DNA from: Anthoceros angustus
Taxonomy: Eukaryota; Plantae; Anthocerotophyta
Assembly: GCA_010909165.1 (NCBI GenBank)
Contig: MU008153.1
Span: 310,001-374,000 of the forward strand
Direction of reading: 5' to 3'
Length of the DNA: 64,000 bases
Part shown: positions 3,806 to 13,575 of the stretch, piece by piece
Layout: every line of letters begins with the position of its first letter
How positions within the stretch are numbered: the stretch's first letter is position 1
Made by a program: the position numbers and the translations under genes
Notes under the pieces: model-generated
The model's database searches: none
Told to the model about the DNA's origin: nothing
What the model saw: the letters and a program-made list of their open reading frames with translations, nothing else

Positions 3806-6622
3806 GCAGCCCCACAGCGCGTCATCAAGGACGTCTGAGGCGACGCGGATAAACAAAGCCGAGTCCAAGCCCGGACCCCTGGCGTCGTAAATGTTCACCT
3901 CGCAGCGATGGGCATTTCTCGGAAACGCGAACCCAGGAAAACTGCGTGGCGAAACAGAAACCACGGCCCGGGTGTCGGCGCCCGCTGCGGCCGATATTTC
4001 TCCCGCCTTGCGCCGCGACCGGTCGCGGGGGCGGGCGCGGGCGCGGGCGCGGCTGCGGGCCCGGTCCGCGAGGCAGTGCTTGCCAGACATGCACCAGCAG
4101 AAAAAGGCAAGTGTCTGGCTGGCTGGGGAACTGCGTCCGACAGTGTAGGTGTGTGCACAATGCCACTGTGGATGCTGCCCACAGTCACCTACCTGGCCAT
4201 GCTCAGTCGTGCCTCACGGCACGCACGAGCGTTAAGAGAAGTGGTGGCGGTAATGGCTGGCTTGGCCTGTCTGTCCTGTCCTCTTACCGGGCTGGGGCGA
4301 ACGGATGTCAAGGTCTCGGACAGGCTGCTGTTCAGACTGACCTCATCAACAGCAGGCTGCTGCTGCTGCAAAAGGTGTCCTCGGGCCAGTCCTACTGTTA
4401 ACTGCACATTGCCACAGGGAGGAAGTGCAGAGTTCAGACCATGTGCCTGGAGCCACCACACTTACATGCGACACCACACTTGGGCACTCACTGCAGTCTC
4501 ACGGATGAGGCCAGACCCACACCGTGAAAGTGGCTTGCTACACCTGCAACAGGCCAATCCTGTGAGGAGGAAGGAGGAGGAGGAGGAGGAGGAGGGCTGA
4601 AATCGATGCGGTCAAGGACATGAGGTTAGTGGATCTCAGTTTCTGGATACGGCAGAGTCACCAACATAACCTGCCTGCCATGGCTGAGATTATCGGATCC
4701 AGAATTCAGTAACAAAAGTGGCAGCAGTCTCCAAGTTCAGAGGACTGCTGCTCGGTGGCTGATCTACTGTTGCAAAACCATCCATTAAGCTGCTTCACAG
4801 AACGAAGTCCAGAGAAAAGCAGAATGCCTACACCTAGAAGCATGTCAGCATGTCCGCATGCACATCCTCCAGTCAAATTGAGCAAAGGAACGCAAACAGA
4901 TCTGAAAAACAAGAGACCAGAAGTCGGACAGTTCCAAACCTCCAAAAACCCTGACCTTGGAACCACCAAAAACCCTGACCTATTCCCCACAGATGAGCAT
5001 AAGCCTGTGAATCAACGAGGACAGTGTTGATAATCGGGGGCACTGGATGCTAGACTCTAGCGACGCAGTCTGAAAGGACGGAGGGAGGCATACTCCATCA
5101 CCGATGCTTCCCCGAGCAAGATCGAAGTGCAGCGAAACCACACCAGTCAGCAGTGAATCGAAGGAAAGGAACGCGGGTTTCCGCAAAGCTAGGACTTGGT
5201 GTGAACCCTCCCTGATATCGAGTACCGAGGAATCGCGGTGACCACGGTGGCAGCAGAAATGAAGCAGGATAAGGAAGCCAAGAGCATTTCAGCAAGAAAC
5301 AGCCGCCAAGTCCTAAGACACCATCCAAACCGTCAGATTCCACAAACCTGCTAGGCATTGGCACGTTCGGCCGGCAGATTGGCGCATTGCATGAACTCTG
5401 TCATCGCTGCACATCCACAGGCGCTGTGGTACCAGATGCTATGAGCCACTGTGCCACATCAAGCTTTCGCAACAAACACCGAAAGTTTTCGAAACACGGC
5501 TCGCCCGTCCAACTTCTCGGAATTCGTCGACTTGGAAAGCAGCTCGTCTGCTTCCCTTCGTCGGAGCTAAGTGATTAGGGTTTCGTCAAAACTGTGGCAC
5601 TCCCGATGATGACGACGAGCTCACGATGGAGCTCGGCCGCCTCTCTGTCTGCCCTTCTGTTGCACCAGATAAACCTAGCAGCATGGGTAGGCTGGTCCTG
5701 CAGGAAGTTGGTTCCATTAGCATGCGAGTCCCCCATCAACCTCACCATGTGGTATTGTTTAACAAACTCTGGAGCAATTACCCAGTTTGTGCTTTGCAAG
5801 GCGAATCCAGAAGCTCAGTGACGCACTCAGTCCAGCCCTCGAAACATGGAAAAGCATCAAGGCCGCCACCTCCTATTCGAGTGAGCAGTGTAACGTGAAT
5901 TTTATACGCTCTACAGAGAGGATATCGAAATGGGCAAAGAGCAGCAGGGAGACAGCAACAAGGGAGCTCATCAGACTCTAGACTGAGGTATCTGGGAGTA
6001 CAGCAGACGAGCGTCATGTTGACTACCTGAATCTGTGGGAAAGGACATCATAGACTGCTGGCTAACCGTCAATGCCAACAACAAAGCGGCTTCTATGAAG
6101 GATATCGTGTTCCAAGGTTTGCTGAACGACCTAGCGTAGCAGTGTGTGAGCAGGCAGTCTACGGCCTTCACCAAATAACGTTCGATGAGTTATGGTCACG
6201 CCTGTTCTTCCGTGCATCAACCTTGGAGGCGTAACAGAAACACAACAGAGGAGGTGCACATTCTCCGATCACCTGCATTTGGGAGCCTACTGTGGAGTTA
6301 GGCATTTGATGCGAGCGTTGAAGGCATTAGATGCGAGCGTTGGCCATCACTGTACAGGGCTCCATGCCATACATTTCTCAAGCCCTAAAAGCCATGCTCA
6401 CAAGCAGCTTGCATGTGCTGTGCACAAACAAGTAACAATCGTTGTTGTTGGAAGAATCCATTAAAAGCCAGGCCCGCTACTGAAGCATGAACATGGCTGG
6501 CAGGGGTATAAGCGTCCATGCAAGGACGATCACAAACCAATGTGAGACGGCCTGAAACAGTAAACGTACCTGAGCAAGGTTTAGTGTTTAAGCGTTGCTT
6601 GGTACCTGCTGAGAGATGAGGG

Positions 6623-7423
6623 ATGACGCTGCTTGGAGGAAGGATGTTGAAGCTCCCTGACGCCATGGTTCGGCAAGCGGCAGTTGGGATCCTGGGCAGG
6701 CTGCGTCGCAGTGTGGTCTCCGATCATTGGCATCAGGCGCTGCCTTGCGGTTTCCGGTCGTGGAGTCAGCCAGGGAGGACGCTCAGCTCTGGGGCGGAAA
6801 ATGGAATCAAGGAGTTCGAGGAGGAGATGGCTGCAGTGTTCGGGACGCCCCTGGCGTCTGGATCTCCGCTTTCACACAAGCTGGGGCCGTCAGGTGGAGG
6901 GGAATCACAGTCTGGGTGTCCGGAGCTCGATTCTGGCAACGTACTCTCGCATGTGGATGATGCGGGAAAAGCTGCTATGGTGGATGTGTCGGGGAAGGCA
7001 GAATCCAGGAGAATTGCGGTTGCTTCAGGTAAGGTGATGCTGGGGCAAAAGGCTTTCTCTTTGGTAGCGGCCAATCAGATTGAGAAGGGGGATGTGTTGA
7101 CGGTTGCGAAAATTGCTGGAATCTGCGGTGCCAAGCAGACCAGTCACTTGATTCCCCTGTGTCATAGCATCATGCTGAGTGGTGTGGATGTCACCCTTAC
7201 CCTGGATGACAAGTCGTGCGCTGTTGACATCCGAGCTGAAGCAAGTGCTGTCGGTCCTACTGGTGTGGAAATGGAGGCTTTGACTGCTGTTTCTGTAGCC
7301 AGTCTCACTGTCTATGACATGTGCAAGGCAGTCTCCAAGAATATTCAAGTGTGTAATATTCAGTTGGAGTCTAAGACGGGTGGGAAGAGTGGGAGGTGGC
7401 AAAGGGGAGAGTCAGAGAGGTAG
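6623..7423 (+). CDS. CNX3: Cyclic pyranopterin monophosphate synthase (MoaC family), intronless, with N-terminal organellar-type leader
   Basis: MoaC motifs LSHVDDAGKAAMVDVSGK, KGDVLTVAKIAGICGAKQTSHLIPLCH, TGVEMEALTAVSVASLTVYDMCKAV, LESKTGGKSG; Arg/Ser-rich leader; alternative start ATG 6665 in gccATGG context. Confidence 0.95.
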   Translation: MTLLGGRMLKLPDAMVRQAAVGILGRLRRSVVSDHWHQALPCGFRSWSQPGRTLSSGAENGIKEFEEEMAAVFGTPLASGSPLSHKLGPSGGGESQSGCPELDSGNVLSHVDDAGKAAMVDVSGKAESRRIAVASGKVMLGQKAFSLVAANQIEKGDVLTVAKIAGICGAKQTSHLIPLCHSIMLSGVDVTLTLDDKSCAVDIRAEASAVGPTGVEMEALTAVSVASLTVYDMCKAVSKNIQVCNIQLESKTGGKSGRWQRGESER

Positions 7424-7510
7424 ATATGGGCTGGGGTTAGTAGAAGAACGTTGGGGCCTGGGACATGTCAGGAATCGGGCTCCGCCGCATCACTGTTCTT
7501 ACTTGAGTTG

Positions 7511-9169
7511 ATGACGATTCTACCTCTTCCCATAGTCGCAAAAGATATTCATTGTGGAGTTTATTTTCCTCTGTGGGTTGGTGCAGCCACTGACCGTGGA
7601 CACAACCTTCATCTGAGGTCATTGTGGGGCAGCGTGCCTTCATCTTCTCCTCCAGGGTATTTGCAGTCTGAGCCAGGGATGGTCTTCAGTGGGGCAAGCA
7701 GGAAACTGGCAGTGGAAGCGGGGAGCGAGAAGCATGAAGTTGTCATTGCTTTGGGTGGCAATATAGGTGACCGGGTTCAAAATTTTAGAAAAGCTGTGAA
7801 GATGATGCGAGTTGCTGGCATCGAGATAGCAGGTCATGCTTGCTTGTATGAGAGTGCCCCAGCCTATGTCACAGATCAGCCCAGCTTCCTAAACTCGGCT
7901 GTGAGGGCTTATACCAGGATGGATCCCTATGACTTGCTCAAAGCCCTGAAGAAGATTGAGAATGACATTGGCCGTGTTGAGGGAGGAATCAGGTTTGGTC
8001 CAAGGCCTATCGATTTGGACATTATTTTCTATGGGAATGCCACTGTGTCAACGGACATACTTCAGGTTCCTCACTGCAGATTCTCAGAGCGTCCTTTTGT
8101 TCTGGCCCCACTTGTTGATCTTCTTGATGCTGAATTAGACCGCCAAGGCCATTGGTCTACCCACCCAAGCACAAGTGGTGGCATTTTTCAGCTTTGGAAT
8201 GCTCAGGGTGGTGAAGCACTTGTTGGGAAGGAAGGTCTGAAGCGGGTTATGCCTGTTGGAGACAAGCTTTGGGATTGGTCTCAAAGAACTCACATCATGG
8301 GAATATTAAATATCACTCCAGATAGCTTCAGTGATGGAGGGAAGTACATGTGTGTGGGAGAAGCAGTGGCACACGCACGAGCTATGGCGACCCAAGGTGC
8401 TGATATTATTGATGTGGGTGCCCAGTCAACTCGACCCAATGCCAAGAGACTGTCGACCGAGGAGGAACTTGGACGTCTTATCCCAGTTCTGGAGGAGTTT
8501 AAGAAGTTCCCAGAGTTGGAGGATGTTGCAGTCTCTGTTGACACCTTTGATGCAACGGTGGCCAGGGAGGCTGTCAGTTGTGGGGCAGAAATTATCAATG
8601 ACGTATCAGGGGGATGTATGGATGCGGAGATGTACAAGACAGCGGCTGGATTAGGAGCTGTCTACGTTGCAATGCACATGCGGGGTGATCCTACGACCAT
8701 GCAAAGTGACACTAACCTGAGATATGATAATGTGTGCCAAGATATTGCCAAGGAACTCAGTGAGAGACTGAGAGATGCTCAGTCTGCTGGTATTCCTGCG
8801 TGGTCCATCATAACCGATCCGGGGATTGGGTTTGCCAAGAACCTTTGGCAAGACCTGGAGATTCTCCGAAATTTGCAAACTTTTAGACAGGACCTTTCAC
8901 ACTCGAGCTTGGCGTTCACTCATGCTCCAGTGGTTGTTGGGCCCTCTAGGAAAAAGTTTTTGGGGCGTCTTACTGGTGTCAGCAAGGCTGAGGATCGGGA
9001 CGCAGCCACAATTGGAGCGATTACTGTGGGAGCGGTAAATGGTGCCAATATTGTAAGGGTACACAACGTGGGAGCTGTGAGGGATGCTCTGAAGGTCGTC
9101 GATGCTATTTGCAAAGGCACCTGGTCTGCTGTTGAGAAAGGCGGGCGCCACATCGCAGAGGCGTTGTAG
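7511..9169 (+). CDS. HPPK-DHPS: Bifunctional HPPK-DHPS (folate synthesis; FolK-FolP), intronless; start uncertain (ATG 7511 or 7679, frame open back to 7424)
   Basis: HPPK motifs VVIALGGNIGDR, DQPSFLNSAV, RFGPRPIDLDII, PH..FSERPFVLAPL; DHPS motifs MGILNITPDSFSDGG, IIDVGAQSTRP, SVDTF, IINDVSGG, DPGIGFAK, GPSRKKF, IVRVHNV. Confidence 0.95.
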   Translation: MTILPLPIVAKDIHCGVYFPLWVGAATDRGHNLHLRSLWGSVPSSSPPGYLQSEPGMVFSGASRKLAVEAGSEKHEVVIALGGNIGDRVQNFRKAVKMMRVAGIEIAGHACLYESAPAYVTDQPSFLNSAVRAYTRMDPYDLLKALKKIENDIGRVEGGIRFGPRPIDLDIIFYGNATVSTDILQVPHCRFSERPFVLAPLVDLLDAELDRQGHWSTHPSTSGGIFQLWNAQGGEALVGKEGLKRVMPVGDKLWDWSQRTHIMGILNITPDSFSDGGKYMCVGEAVAHARAMATQGADIIDVGAQSTRPNAKRLSTEEELGRLIPVLEEFKKFPELEDVAVSVDTFDATVAREAVSCGAEIINDVSGGCMDAEMYKTAAGLGAVYVAMHMRGDPTTMQSDTNLRYDNVCQDIAKELSERLRDAQSAGIPAWSIITDPGIGFAKNLWQDLEILRNLQTFRQDLSHSSLAFTHAPVVVGPSRKKFLGRLTGVSKAEDRDAATIGAITVGAVNGANIVRVHNVGAVRDALKVVDAICKGTWSAVEKGGRHIAEAL

Positions 9170-9574
9170 CAGTGGGAATGTACGCAAGTCAAAAAAGCAT
9201 TGTACTTGCCGCAATATCTGGATGAAATGTAGTAGTTTCTTATGTGCCCTCCTGTAGTGCAGAGGAGCCATAGACCTAAGGCTCCCAAGACAACAACAGG
9301 TATCTAGCCGAAAAGATGGCAAGTTGGTTGAAAGCAGTCTGCAGGCCAGAGAAGATCAGGCTCTGGTGTGCACCTGCGGAGACCTGGCTTTTGCTTTCGT
9401 CATGTGGCTTCTGAAGATGCCTTTGGCAGGGTACAAATCCTATGAGAGGGATCGTCGCTTTTGTCAGCTGTCGGCATCTCACTCTCTTTCAAGGCGCAGG
9501 GCATATTTATAATTGGAGGGCATTTGGCATGAGAGGCCGCCGACAACTTGCAGATGTTGCTTGTCGTTCACATG

Positions 9575-11185
9575 TTACACCTGAGTGTTGGTTTCGTTAG
9601 ATATGGCCTGGTGAACCGACATGCCATGCTCATAGCATGGCCTTCCTTTCCCCTACTCCCCTCTCTCTTCGCCGGTTCGATCCCGGAACCGGGCAACCGG
9701 GGACGACGGGAAGTTAATTTAAGCTCCCCATTAGAAGTTTTATAAACCTTATGAAATAATCTTACTAGATACATATCCCCATAACTTAACCTAACGTGAT
9801 TGAGAATTTTTATTACTCTTATGAAATGATCTTACTATATATCCCCATAACTTAACCTACATGCTTGTTTCATTGTGCTCGTACTTAGAGAAAGATTTGC
9901 AAATTCGTTGTAGAGTTCATGAGGATACTATTGGTCTAGGAATGAGTCTTTTCCATTCTTTACTTGTTAGATTGGAGTTGGAAAAGTATTTCTTATAAGC
10001 TTCATGACTATCAGATTAGTTTGGGAAATCAGTGTCTTAACTCTTAGTCATCAAATGGGTTCTAAAAATTTATATTTTAAGTTCAAAATTTAATATTTTT
10101 AAAATTTTTAGATGACTTATAGACACGAGTAGAAGAAGTAGAAGTTGAAGGACATGCAAGCGAAGTTGACGTTAAGATTGCTGCAATTTTGATTGGTCTA
10201 GCCGTAATTTAGAAGATCATAGTTGATCTTCAAAGCTCTTCACAAAGATAATTTGAACACAGAAAAAAGCTTGGTACCTCTGAGGTTCTGCTAAGGTTAA
10301 AGTACCTCTCGGTTTCTGCTTGAAGCCGAAAATCTGAGGGGCAAGGTTTGTTCCGCATGGGGATGTTAGTCAATCATAAGTTTCAATCAGCCATCTTTGC
10401 CCTCTACGAATTAAGTGGGCAATGACAGAATACTGCGCACAGGATGGCGGCGGCTGAGAAATATGCCCTATTCTCCAACACATCAATCTCTTGGGTGTCA
10501 TTAGGCAAAGCCCAAGCGAAGTGACGCTTTGCAGCAGTCTGGCGATGGAGAGCAGCATCAGTCGCATCAAGTACTCGGCTCTGATGCACAACCTCCTCTC
10601 GGTGCCGAAGAGCTCCATTTTCACCGGCCCCTTCACGAGCCCCAACAATGCAGTTCACGTCTTAGTTACTGCAAAGCACGCCCAACAGCACACCTATTTA
10701 CTCAGCTACAAGACGAAAAACGTTGTAAACTGCATTCGCTGCATTGTTATCATATCTATGCCCATTAAATGGGGTTGTGATATAGGCTATAAACTACGTT
10801 GTGAATAATGTTGTAAACTCCATTCACTTTATGGTATGCTATATTATAATACCTATGCATAGTAAATGGAGTTATGATATATGCTATAAACTACGTTGTG
10901 AATAGGCATTGGCTTGGGTGATACTCTCATCCTTCATTTAAGTTGGTTTGTGTTTGAAGGAGAACTTCCGATTAGGGTTGGAAATTTAGGTCGCAATTGA
11001 TACAGGATTACTAGTTATGTATAGGTGTATCGCCGCGGCGGCGACGGAACTTGCATTAGTTCCCCGTCGCCCCGGTCGCCAGGTCGCGGGTTCCCGCGGC
11101 GAAGAGAGAGGGAGGTAGGGGAGAGGAAGGCCATGCTATGCATGGCATCTCGGCATGTCGATACCCACATTTTACGTGTAGCCCT
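9575..11185. repeat. Segment bounded by diverged inverted repeats (core arms ~9631-9727 and ~11047-11141); possible Pack-MULE-like element
   Basis: CATAGCATGGCCTTCCTTTCCCCTACTCCCCTCTCTCTTCGCCG at 9631 matches the reverse complement of 11097-11141 with few mismatches; no TSD found. Confidence 0.55.
9885..10683 (-). pseudogene. Inverted, decayed copy of the last exon and 3' flank of the neighbouring P450
   Basis: 10388-10683 reverse-complements 13313-13597 (LGLVKGPVKMELFGTERRLCIRAEY vs LGLGKGPLKMVPFGTGRRSCVGAEY, with frameshifts); 9885-10345 matches parts of 13634-14438. Confidence 0.9.
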
Positions 11186-11571: not shown

Positions 11572-13575
11572 ATGGAGTGTGCCATTGTCTTAGTTGCTCT
11601 GGTGGCTGTCACAAGTGTGCTACTGCTTCTGCGGGGTGCATTGGTCAGGGCTCCTTTGCTGAAGCTTCCTCCAGGCCCCACTCAGCTTCCATTGCTGGGA
11701 AACCTTGGGATATTGCTCGTCTCCAAAAATTTGCCACGTGACCTGATCAAGCTCTCCAAGCAGTACGGTCCTATCATGTGGCTGCAGCTTGGTTCTCGTG
11801 GAGCAGCTGTGGTGTCCTCTTCAGAGCTGGCCCGGGAGGTGCTCAAGGAACAGGGTCAGGTGTTTGCCTCTCGTCCCTTCAACTACGCCTCGTCCCAGCT
11901 CACCTGTGATGGCCAGGACATTGGAGTGGCTCCCTACGGCCCCCTTCAGACCCACCAGAGGTATTCAAACATTGTTGCACCATTTTCTTATCCTTGTTTT
12001 CTATTTATGCCTGAGATCCGGACGTTGGTCTCGACAGGAAGCTTCTGGCTTCACAGTTGCTCTACCCCATTATGACGGCCAAAAGTGAGGAAGCCAGAAT
12101 GGCAGAAGTGAACTTCATGGTGGAGGCCGTCAGGCAGCACATTCTCAAGGCCAAACCCAACAAACCGGAACCTGTGGATCTGGGACTCTTGTTCCGGATC
12201 CTCACCCTGAACAACATCATGCGGATTGGCACCAACCAAGCTCTGGTTACCTACGACAACATCGCAGGGCAGTCCACGACCAAAGATGTGAGCTGAAATC
12301 CTAGACGTATATTGAAGCTCAAAAGCTCAGCAACGCTTGGGACTGAATTCAATGTGGGCCTTCAAGTCTGCAGGTGCAGATGTGACGGACGCAGAGCGAT
12401 TCTACAGCATGATGAAGGACTACGGGATGTGCTTCGCTTTGCCCATGTTGGGAGATTACATTCCCTGGCTCTCCTTTGTGGATGTACTCAATGGCAATAG
12501 AGCCAGGGTGAAACACGTTCGGCGCCGGCTGGATGCCTACGTGAGCAGTGTCATCCAAGAGCATAAAGATAAGGGAAGCTCGGAGTCTGGTCACGGCATG
12601 GACTACGTCGACGTTCTGCTCAGGCTGAAGCAGCCAGACAACCTGATCCAGGCCCAAATTCTGGTAAGCCCTTGCAACGATTGCTTTTGCAATCCCCCTA
12701 CCTTCCTATCAACATTTCCGGGCAACCTCATCCGCGGCGTGCAGGACCTGATCGTGGCGGGGACCGATACCATTTCCACGACCTTGGAATGGGCCTTCAC
12801 GGAAATGCTGCGAAACCCTAGCGTGTACAAGCGGGCGAGGCAGGAGCTGCTGTCAGTGGTCGGCCAGGACCGGTCCGTGATGGAACCGGATCTGCCCAAC
12901 CTGCCCTACATCGACGCGATAGTGAAGGAAACCTTGCGGATGTATCCCTCAGTGCCTCTCCTGCTGCCGCATCTGTCCATCTCGGACACCAAGCTGGCGG
13001 GCTACCACATCCCTGCCAACACCACCATCTTCATCAACGCCCTGGCCATCGGCAGAGACCCCAGTCTGTGGACAGATCCCGACGAGTTCTTACCGGAAAG
13101 GTGGTTGGACAGGTCTGTCATCTTGTCTCCCTCTGCTGAGTCGATGCTTGTCTTGCCGATTGTTTTTAAGAAAAGGAGCACTGGTGATCATGATGCATGT
13201 AGCGATACGGGAGACGCCGGGTTTCGATTCTGGTACCTCGCGCATGCAAAGCTCGCGCTCTACCATCTGAGCTACGCCCTCGGATTCCCTGAGAAAATGT
13301 CTGTCCCGTGGTGCGTGCTTTGCAGTAACCAAGACGTGAACGTGTTGGGGCTCGGGAAGGGGCCGTTGAAGATGGTGCCCTTCGGCACCGGGAGGAGGTC
13401 GTGCGTCGGAGCCGAGTACGCGTTGCGGCTGATGCCGCTCTCCATCGCCAGACTGCTGCAAAGCTTCACTTGGGCTTTGCCTGATGACGCCCAGGAGATC
13501 AATGTGCTGGAGAATCCGGGCGTATTTCTCAGCCGACGCCATCCTGTGCGCAGTGTTCCATCGTTGCCCTCTTAA
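11572..13575 (+). CDS. Cytochrome P450, CYP71 clan (A-type); 5 exons: 11572-11960, 12038-12287, 12367(or 12374)-12663, 12745-13112, 13326-13575
   Basis: Membrane anchor plus LPPGP hinge, AGTDT I-helix, ETLR, PERW, heme motif PFGTGRRSCVG; GT-AG junctions are in phase except exon 2/3 (see findings). Confidence 0.9.

Follow-up and report, generated by a model that had tools for sequence, protein, structure and literature searches.

Alternative splicing of one transcription unit probably provides both CNX3 and HPPK-DHPS in a bryophyte-grade plant

In the window (the whole stretch of 64,000 nucleotides that was analysed), a CNX3 open reading frame of 266 aa on the forward strand (6623-7423) ends with a single TAG (7421-7423), and the same frame is then open from 7424 to 9169, includes complete HPPK-DHPS and ends with the stop at 9167-9169. 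This layout, as reported in the first-pass annotation, is confirmed and raises the question of how the second enzyme is expressed. The in-frame ATGs downstream of the CNX3 stop are located at 7511 (87 nt past the stop) and 7679. The region 7424-7678 is stop-free in 2.2% of base shuffles, in agreement with the chance of about 2% estimated before, and 7424-7586 alone is stop-free in 5.8% of them. The annotation regarded both ORFs as intronless and proposed that one mRNA gives both proteins by reinitiation or leaky scanning, or an ~848-aa fusion protein by readthrough, with a spliced route mentioned in passing.

Run X1 contains no difference from the window across 3.3 kb. Because its contig coverage is restricted to 6508-9845, this run behaves as RNA, which it almost certainly is. 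The contigs of three species start at 6508, 6509 and 6530, and the region 6176-6463 has no coverage. The X1 contigs form a clean two-branch bubble with breaks exactly at 7028/6999 and 7613/7584. One branch (6999-7613) retains 7029-7586 with a k-mer depth of 22.5, and the other joins 7028 to 7587 with a k-mer depth of 21. Two RNA forms of similar k-mer depth are present in this one sample, contig depth being only a rough guide to the isoform ratio. The joint of the contigs at 7025 to 7584 corresponds to 558 skipped nucleotides bounded by GT and AG when the cut is placed 3 nt further on. The junction contig is 57 nt long, which is the length expected of a k=31 graph for a clean junction with three ambiguous bases. 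The depths of the flanks are 33.7 upstream and 35.3 downstream, and therefore, with no downstream excess, a second promoter is not called for. An RNA that joins the CNX3 leader exon in frame to HPPK-DHPS is present, as seen in one junction contig (7028|7587, GT..AG) of one run. This result ties the CNX3 exon to the HPPK-DHPS exon, as expected if the two ORFs lie in one transcribed unit, and the spliced route is what the RNA data reveal: an in-frame intron of 558 nt, the removal of which eliminates the MoaC body and the stop. The statement that both ORFs are intronless holds in that neither requires splicing to be read, but it misses this alternative intron.

Three relatives (organisms B, C and D) provide further evidence for a single unit. 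The two ORFs are contiguous in all three (~94% identical); they lie within single contigs in two of them, and short overlapping contigs cover most of the span in the third. Unspliced RNA with both ORFs exists in four species, as judged from the contigs. The assembled contigs of two relatives run straight through the intron 7029-7586, and therefore the spliced form in these two is rarer, absent or dropped by the assembler. The splice may nevertheless be conserved in the relatives.

The signals at the junction are those of an ordinary intron. The donor, CAG|GTAAGG, agrees with the consensus at 8 of 9 positions, and the acceptor consists of a T-rich (pyrimidine-rich) tract followed by GGTGCAG|CC. 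The microhomology flanking the junction is 3 nt only. The reading frame is kept on splicing, because the intron length of 558 nt is 3 x 186, and codon 136 at the junction becomes GCC (Ala). The spliced product consists of CNX3 residues 1-135, Ala and HPPK-DHPS, with ~662 aa in total, or ~648 aa when counted from ATG 6665. The candidate starts in exon 1 are ATG 6623, 6644 and 6665, the last of which lines up with the start of a standalone CNX3 (L004). The GGTAAGG donor is also found in this standalone CNX3 and in Marchantia CNX3. L004, together with a contig of organism D, hints at a standalone paralogue of CNX3. The intron takes in the CNX3 body together with its TAG and the spacer. Once this intron is taken into account, 31 of the 85 sense codons that had seemed surprising (those at 7587-7678) simply belong to the normal coding region of the spliced mRNA; the openness of the remaining 54 is at chance level, and these codons are out of frame in one relative. 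The parts of the transcription unit are summarised in the table.

Table. Features of the proposed CNX3/HPPK-DHPS transcription unit (positions in the window)
Feature	Position	Strand	Remarks
5' untranslated leader	6508..6622	+	approximate start, from contig starts
Upstream ORF, in-frame, inside 5' leader	6518-6619	+	from ATG list
Shared first coding exon	6623..7028	+	CNX3 residues 1-135 and first base of codon 136
Alternative intron	7029..7586	+	558 nt, 186 codons, phase 1; GT..AG junction contig
Remainder of CNX3/MoaC CDS and TAG	7029..7423	+	Pfam MoaC; proposed to be translated only from unspliced RNA
Non-coding spacer	7424..7586	+	UTR-like composition; indels in relatives
Second coding exon	7587..9169	+	49-residue linker, HPPK 7742-8122, DHPS 8297-9064, stop 9167-9169
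3' UTR	9170..9845	+	same-species contig ends at 9845; contigs of relatives end at 9413-9429

Both proteins retain intact domains when the two exons are analysed separately in domain and structure searches. CNX3 contains the full-length Pfam MoaC domain (PF01967, 1-136/136, aa 119-254, E 1.5e-52), and its residues 108-261 match PDB MoaC 2eey with an E of 1e-39, the alignment being collinear with 2eey and 1ekr. An exact look-up of the window's CNX3 returned no record, and searches of protein collections for close relatives gave no match above 67% identity. In the MoaC body (7029-7402), 11 of 13 changes relative to the relatives are synonymous and 12 of the 13 affect the third position of a codon (P = 1.7e-5). 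This pattern indicates that the MoaC body is under purifying selection, as expected of a live gene and not of a relic. The part encoded by exon 1 starts with an arginine-rich stretch that resembles a presequence, continues through a variable linker and ends ~28 residues into the MoaC fold, with the first MoaC strand included; its changes in the relatives (7 synonymous and 13 non-synonymous) fit a leader and linker. The first 30 residues of CNX3 contain 4-6 R+K and 1-2 D+E, and the N-termini from ATG 7511 and ATG 7679 have a net charge of 0. The N-terminal extension of CNX3 is ~105 residues long and homologous to that of L004; leaders of plant CNX2 and CNX3 are cited in 10.1101/429183. The HPPK-DHPS part contains both domains complete and in the standard order (HPPK, PF01288, 1-114/116, nt 7742-8122; Pterin_bind, PF00809, 1-244/244, nt 8297-9064). 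It is collinear with PDB 7mpy, "Folate synthesis bifunctional protein", over 461 aligned residues (E 3.5e-167).

The spacer, which separates the acceptor from the CNX3 stop, behaves differently from the two coding exons. Its in-frame GC3 of 0.39 and T content of 31% resemble those of UTRs. In the single contigs of organisms B and C, in which all indels are accounted for, indels are confined to the 5' leader, the spacer and the 3' UTR (several past 9228), apart from one in-frame duplication of 84 nt in exon 1; the short contigs of organism D add no others. The exon 7587-9169 is free of indels in the single contigs of organisms B and C and in the fragmentary contigs of organism D. The relatives have a 3-nt deletion in the spacer, and organism B also has a 1-nt deletion at 7544, with the result that translation continuing past the TAG or started at ATG 7511 would end at ~7614. 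In organism B the reading frame is thus interrupted ahead of the HPPK domain, in a region for which frame retention in relatives had been proposed as a check, and the spacer frame is probably open in the window species only by chance. This deletion rules out ATG 7511 as a start in organism B, and together with the UTR-like composition of the spacer it is the reason for rejecting that start. An RNA element in the spacer was likewise considered and rejected, because a search of Rfam over 5500-10500 gave no match at E <= 0.1 and the fold of the spacer is unremarkable (z = -1.1), without unusual structure. A tRNA scan found nothing at the tRNA-like motif near 9660-9700. The distal 3' UTR contains repeat-derived sequence, with tandem duplications at 9733-9859. 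The 14-nt direct repeat at 7421-7434 and 9598-9611 was considered as a target-site duplication and rejected as being at chance level: about one repeat pair of this type is expected in 4.1 kb, 42 families of them are found, and the second copy lies in sequence that is missing from the transcripts of the relatives. No poly(A) remnant was seen as a footprint of retroposition.

We consider it probable (roughly 0.65) that 6508-9845 is a single nuclear transcription unit, the primary transcript of which is processed in two ways, such that retention of the intron gives CNX3 and its removal gives leader-HPPK-DHPS. Alternative splicing, rather than readthrough or reinitiation, is the most likely mechanism. 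When the intron is retained, the first long ORF would be that of CNX3, a MoaC-type cyclic pyranopterin monophosphate synthase, ending at TAG 7421, and the HPPK-DHPS sequence would ride along as a long 3' UTR. When it is removed, CNX3 residues 1-135 would run in frame into the 49-residue linker and the complete HPPK-DHPS, so that the spliced RNA would be an ordinary monocistronic mRNA for the ~662-aa precursor and probably the main source of HPPK-DHPS. The shared leader may act as a mitochondrial presequence that imports both enzymes, by analogy with grass sdh2-rps14, and the fused precursor may be trimmed after import. As to its origin, an intron-less and probably retroposed copy of HPPK-DHPS may have inserted immediately 3' of a CNX3 copy and co-opted the latent GGTAAGG donor, which would be ancient in the CNX3 coding sequence. 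Two further points count against this explanation. An unspliced CNX3 mRNA with a 3' UTR of ~2.4 kb is expected to be unstable in plants, and it is unusual that the leader would add part of the MoaC fold to the precursor of HPPK-DHPS.

The strongest competitor, although an unlikely one, is that the locus produces two overlapping but separate mRNAs, with an HPPK-DHPS promoter inside or just after CNX3 (start in 7424-7680) and with the splice as a minor or non-functional by-product. Translation from AUG 7679 (or 7511) would then yield an enzyme that lacks a leader and may be cytosolic. In Arabidopsis, HPPK-DHPS occurs as a cytosolic isoform in addition to the mitochondrial one, the context of AUG 7679 is good (G at -3 and G at +4), the contigs of the relatives are unspliced, and contigs do not reveal transcript ends, so that a contig over two genes does not prove one transcript. 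However, the downstream depth does not exceed the upstream depth, the two branches of the bubble already account for it, and the junction branch represents about half of the molecules and not a trace species. In addition, 7587-7678, upstream of AUG 7679, is free of indels in the covering contigs of the relatives, unlike the adjacent spacer, and this spacer of only 163 nt contains no obvious promoter or poly(A) signals. It is less likely still that the junction does not arise from splicing, but from template switching by reverse transcriptase (a "falsitron") or from an expressed paralogue or allele that lacks the 558 nt. The splice is represented by one junction contig of one run, some exitron-like junctions are reverse-transcription artefacts, and such artefacts can attain high read fractions in cDNA data (PMC8240250). 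Typical artefacts have direct repeats of at least 4 nt on both sides and show no GU-AG, no U1 complementarity and no pyrimidine tract (PMC8240250). The junction reported here, in contrast, combines GT..AG with a near-consensus donor and a pyrimidine-rich acceptor, its two sides share no more than 3 nt, and the long ORF that it re-creates is exactly in frame. A deletion allele is improbable, since its ends would have to coincide precisely with splice signals.

Equally low is the chance that the unspliced RNA serves as a true bicistronic mRNA, from which CNX3 and then, by reinitiation or internal entry at AUG 7679 or 7511, HPPK-DHPS are translated. Unspliced RNA carrying both ORFs does occur in all four species, and Moco genes of animals have been discussed as bicistronic, but the bicistronic form of MOCS1 is translated only at its first ORF, the second being expressed via splicing (10.1101/429183). 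Leaky scanning is excluded, because ~20 AUGs lie between 6623 and 7679; the spacer offers neither an Rfam element nor unusual structure; and in organism B ATG 7511 does not share the frame of HPPK-DHPS. Reinitiation after an ORF of 266 codons is very inefficient. The earlier proposal of reinitiation or leaky scanning is not supported by these results. Programmed readthrough of TAG 7421 to the ~848-aa MoaC-HPPK-DHPS protein is the least credible of all. It derives its appeal from the frame that is open from the TAG to 9169 in the window species, but 54 spacer codons would be free of stops by chance with a probability of 5.8%, the composition is UTR-like without a stimulatory structure, and the 1-nt deletion at 7544, which lies between the TAG and the acceptor, rules out readthrough in organism B, where the downstream frame is not kept open. 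The stop context AGG-TAG-ATA is not known to be leaky, as the annotation also remarked. What stands of the predicted fusion is the in-frame joining, which occurs by splicing and includes only the first 135 residues of CNX3, not a whole MoaC domain.

The proposed alternative splicing resembles several known systems. In the grass sdh2-rps14 gene (rice, maize, wheat), an sdh2 intron harbours rps14, the expression of which depends on alternative splicing that provides it with the SDHB targeting peptide (PMC1543663, citing Kubo et al. 1999 and Figueroa et al. 1999). The likeness is that splicing of one nuclear transcript places an N-terminal leader exon of the first gene in frame with an unrelated intron-less coding sequence, that one leader would serve two different proteins (for which import is presumed here), and that the second gene probably came by RNA-mediated insertion. 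In contrast to the grass gene as described there, the second gene here encodes a nuclear bifunctional folate enzyme instead of a transferred organellar ribosomal protein, and HPPK-DHPS follows a complete first ORF instead of lying in a pre-existing intron. The donor here is latent in coding sequence, the removed "intron" is the coding body of the first enzyme, and the lineage is bryophyte-grade and not grasses. Human MOCS1 (MOCS1A/MOCS1AB) is also a Moco locus with two consecutive ORFs and with a MoaC homologue as one of the two partners. Its unspliced "bicistronic" form gives the first protein only, and alternative splicing drops the stop of the first ORF and fuses the frames, as does the intron here that contains TAG 7421-7423; splicing is the sole route to the second ORF, and the fusion protein is imported and cleaved (10.1101/429183). 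However, the MoaC homologue is downstream in MOCS1 and upstream here, and the MOCS1 fusion keeps nearly all of MOCS1A, whereas the MoaC catalytic body is spliced out here. Both MOCS1 ORFs serve the same reaction, whereas MoaC leads to Moco and its partner here to folate, the two having in common pterin chemistry and, in plants, the mitochondrial compartment.

The intron is also similar to exitrons (Marquez et al. 2015, PMC4484396) in having canonical signals within what otherwise reads as one long exon, exon-like GC, a length divisible by three, a bias towards synonymous substitutions and an ancestral coding origin. Exitrons are, however, defined as lacking a stop codon and lying within one ORF (PMC4484396), whereas this intron includes TAG 7421 and the 163-nt spacer and bridges two ORFs. 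The separate genes of plants (Arabidopsis; PDB 7mpy) have the same domain architecture, and the long N-terminal extension of CNX3 is as described for plants. HPPK-DHPS of Sphagnum, Ceratodon and Marchantia has internal introns and its own leader and is not located beside CNX3, whereas the HPPK-DHPS described here lies next to CNX3 and lacks a leader of its own with a frame preserved in every relative. The 10 kb that precede HPPK-DHPS contain no MoaC in Sphagnum, Ceratodon or Marchantia paleacea, Marchantia CNX3 has unrelated genes as neighbours, and inspection by eye of the N-termini of bryophyte HPPK-DHPS revealed no CNX3-like leader. A literature search found no paper that describes the CNX3/HPPK-DHPS pairing, of which the annotation knew no description either.

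Alternative splicing is known to produce two complete, unrelated enzymes from one nuclear gene in very few cases, with grass sdh2-rps14 and animal MOCS1 as the textbook examples. The locus described here would extend this short list to a land-plant lineage that diverged early, and it would show in detail how a gene copy arriving without a targeting signal borrows one, through a new acceptor and a latent donor; this donor, in the MoaC coding sequence, would predate the split of liverworts and this lineage. For annotation, gene callers would report two intron-less genes or one and miss the HPPK-DHPS leader. A more ambitious reading, which we put forward as possible but doubtful, is that the plant obtains HPPK-DHPS from this composite locus alone, that the choice of the intron is a regulated switch by which the output of one promoter is shared between Moco and folate synthesis in mitochondria, that this arrangement is conserved across the clade, and that the precursor is cleaved after import. 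If this were true, the locus would be a two-enzyme gene of a kind undescribed for land-plant primary metabolism. A functional coupling of Moco and folate synthesis is speculation at this stage, and the locus raises the question of whether splicing balances two GTP-derived pterin pathways.

CNX3 and HPPK-DHPS lie in a single reading frame split by one TAG, and the first-pass annotation is accurate in this layout, which agrees with the ORFs, the Pfam domains and the structure matches. Solved MoaC structures align with CNX3 residues 108-261, and the part beyond the TAG matches PDB 7mpy ('Folate synthesis bifunctional protein') collinearly at E 3.5e-167. The ATGs in frame after the CNX3 stop are located at 7511 and 7679. 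A stop-free 7424-7678 arises by chance in 2.2% of sequence shuffles, which reproduces the earlier estimate of about 2% for the stop-free run before ATG 7679.

Features of the CNX3/HPPK-DHPS unit and the gene downstream of it
Feature	Position	Strand	Description
CNX3 ORF	6623-7423	+	266 aa; complete MoaC domain, Pfam 1-136/136, E 1.5e-52
CNX3 stop TAG	7421-7423	+	same frame open beyond, until stop 9167-9169
Alternative intron	7029-7586	+	558 nt = 186 codons; donor CAG/GTAAGG; acceptor T-rich tract then GGTGCAG/CC
HPPK domain, complete	7742-8122	+	Pfam; within stretch downstream of TAG
DHPS/Pterin_bind domain, complete	8297-9064	+	Pfam; within stretch downstream of TAG
Cytochrome P450, next gene downstream	11572-12075 + 12337-13575	+	at least 2 ORF pieces

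Of the words sampled from 6500-9300, 99% occur in the public run X1, whose contigs show no differences from the window. X1 is taken as a transcriptome, judged by its behaviour, because its contig total is small (29 million letters), the unit at 6508-9845 is covered at a depth of 22-35 and the flank at 6176-6463 has no coverage. The contigs over the unit are 6508-7028, 6999-7613 (depth 22.5), 7584-9845 and a 57-nt joint from 7025 to 7584 (depth 21), which is classed as 'skips 558, GT..AG (cut +3)'. In a k=31 graph, a two-branch bubble would give contig breaks at exactly these positions. Exon 1 runs to the first base of codon 136, which splicing completes as GCC (Ala). Because the intron is in frame and contains the TAG, the unspliced RNA would encode CNX3 and the spliced RNA would encode CNX3 residues 1-135, Ala, a 49-residue linker and whole HPPK-DHPS, a leader-HPPK-DHPS of ~662 aa counted from ATG 6623; exons 1 and 2 of this product were searched separately. 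Thus, the two enzymes of the unit are most likely expressed via alternative splicing, as indicated by the 7028/7587 junction of the single sample X1, which takes the place of the readthrough or reinitiation proposed by the first-pass annotation.

This junction is unlikely to be a reverse-transcription artefact, because it has GT..AG, a near-consensus donor, a pyrimidine-rich acceptor and 3 nt of shared sequence, whereas artefact junctions lack splice signals and lie between longer direct repeats (PMC8240250). HPPK-DHPS may be transcribed from a separate internal promoter, with which the contigs are compatible, but the depths are explained without one: although contig depth is a rough measure only, the values flanking the intron in X1 (33.7 upstream and 35.3 downstream) leave no excess that calls for a second promoter. 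Reinitiation or leaky scanning to HPPK-DHPS on the unspliced RNA is unlikely, because about 20 AUGs lie upstream of 7679, and because the second ORF of MOCS1, the best-known 'bicistronic' Moco gene, is expressed only by splicing (10.1101/429183). Readthrough of the TAG is refuted for the relative B, in which a deletion at 7544 brings in a stop near 7614, and is unsupported elsewhere. Neither an Rfam element nor an unusual structure is found in the spacer (7424-7586) between the TAG and the acceptor.

The relatives B, C and D, which are known from run contigs, are ~94% identical to the window. In B and in C, both ORFs are contained, unspliced, in one contig (6509/6530 to 9413/9429); for D there are only short overlapping contigs, which cover most of 6634-9247 but leave out 7488-7546. 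The indels of the B and C contigs are all accounted for: several in the 5' leader (6600-6621), an 84-nt duplication within exon 1, the loss of 3 nt at 7437/7438 and, in B only, a 1-nt deletion at 7544, both in the spacer, and several in the 3' UTR beyond 9228. No indel is found in these contigs in the MoaC body (CNX3 coding from 7029 on) or in 7587-9169, and the sole frame-breaking change of the whole unit falls within the 163-nt spacer, which is non-coding under the splicing model. Both ORFs are contiguous in B and C, as the first-pass annotation would have it, but the frame is broken in the spacer of B by the 7544 deletion. With the indels of B, a ribosome from the TAG or ATG 7511 would stop near 7614, assuming that the substitutions of B do not alter this. 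The in-frame GC3 of the spacer is UTR-like (0.39, as compared to 0.48-0.61 for the coding parts). In the MoaC body, for which differences are listed to 7402, third codon positions account for 12 of the 13 substitutions, and 11 of the 13 are synonymous (P = 1.7e-5), which argues that CNX3 is a live gene and more than intron filler. Exon 1 has 7 synonymous and 13 non-synonymous changes relative to these organisms, as expected of a leader/linker. The duplication is an in-frame tandem one (81 nt + AGG, 28 codons) of window 6769-6849, and its presence in B, C and D but not in the window species indicates that the leader is changing fast in length. The 7028/7587 junction is not present in the relatives' contigs; since minor branches are discarded in assembly, this means only that the spliced form is less abundant in their samples than in X1.

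The conserved CNX3 start is probably 6665 or 6644, because B lacks 7 nt at 6621, a deletion that probably removes ATG 6623, and because the standalone CNX3 of the database contig L004 begins at the position matching ATG 6665. The start annotated at 6623 may thus be placed too far upstream. In the relatives, 6600-6627 contains several small indels, the 7-nt deletion of B among them. ATG 6623 is separated by 3 nt from the end of an in-frame upstream ORF (6518-6619). Further upstream, ~170-210 nt from the start of the transcript contig, the 21/22-nt sequence AGGCATTTGATGCGAGCGTTG is tandemly repeated at 6300-6342 in two copies that are 95% alike, a possible promoter element. Upstream of the unit, a low-depth X1 contig at 5781-6109 (depth 4.2, minus orientation) is a weakly expressed transcript or UTR of a neighbouring gene. 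The distal 3' UTR (9430-9860) probably represents a repeat or a SINE-like insertion: it is not in the relatives' contigs, it contains a 66-70-nt tandem duplication at 9733-9859, and 9618-9671 matches other contigs of the relatives' runs at a depth of >200. It also contains a tRNA-like GGTTCGATCCCGG motif, at which no tRNA is called. The division of the cytochrome P450 gene into ORF pieces indicates that ordinary introns occur in the genome, and that the intron-less CNX3/HPPK-DHPS unit does not reflect a genome-wide property.

The closest database proteins, from Sphagnum, Diphasiastrum, Ceratodon, Marchantia and one Logan contig, are only 59-67% identical, as would fit a lineage of bryophyte grade. 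In Sphagnum, Ceratodon and Marchantia paleacea, HPPK-DHPS has a leader of its own and is interrupted by introns, one of which is at a common position near residue 397 of the 7424-9166 translation. The synteny that the first-pass annotation proposed to check in related species is not seen in these three plants, in which MoaC is not found within 10 kb upstream of HPPK-DHPS. CNX3 of L004 (L004:2288-3019), the best CNX3 relative (67% protein identity, and 82% nucleotide identity in the domain), is standalone and intron-less and ends in a TAG of its own; its 3' region is unrelated, and the opposite strand carries an FKBP gene. A second, more divergent D contig (run X20) is 89% identical over 7267-7401, departs from the window at 7401 and beyond it resembles the L004 3' end, suggesting that the clade probably has a standalone, intron-less CNX3 paralogue, with a different 3' end and no HPPK-DHPS behind it, in addition to the composite locus. 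The donor heptamer GGTAAGG (7027-7033) spans the codons for Gly-Lys-Val in the first MoaC strand, and is also present in L004 (L004:2637-2643) and Marchantia polymorpha CNX3, genes without known splicing there; the sole intron of the latter is located elsewhere, in the N-terminal extension. GGTAAGG is a latent splice donor within the CNX3 coding sequence. We infer that an intron-less HPPK-DHPS copy, perhaps retroposed, would have inserted behind a CNX3 copy, and that a new acceptor paired with this latent donor would have allowed its expression. Around the unit, neither a credible target-site duplication nor a poly(A) remnant is found.

The unit resembles grass sdh2-rps14, in which alternative splicing of one transcript shares a mitochondrial leader between two proteins (PMC1543663), in having one transcript, alternative splicing and a leader that two proteins would share, and human MOCS1, in which a splice removes the stop of the first ORF (10.1101/429183), in that its intron also takes out this stop. 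It differs from both in the partner enzymes, in the ORF order and in that the 'intron' removed encodes the body of the first enzyme. The intron is similar to an exitron, but the stop codon inside it places it outside the definition (PMC4484396). No description of the CNX3/HPPK-DHPS pairing was found in the literature. Among the first 30 residues from any of the candidate starts 6623, 6644 and 6665, 4-6 are Arg/Lys and 1-2 are acidic; with ATG 7511 or ATG 7679 as the start, the N-terminus has a net charge of 0. In pea, HPPK-DHPS is a mitochondrial enzyme, as is one Arabidopsis isoform. For plant CNX3, a long N-terminal extension that targets mitochondria has been described (Teschner et al. 2010, as cited in 10.1101/429183). 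The shared leader of the unit may import both CNX3 and HPPK-DHPS into the mitochondrion.
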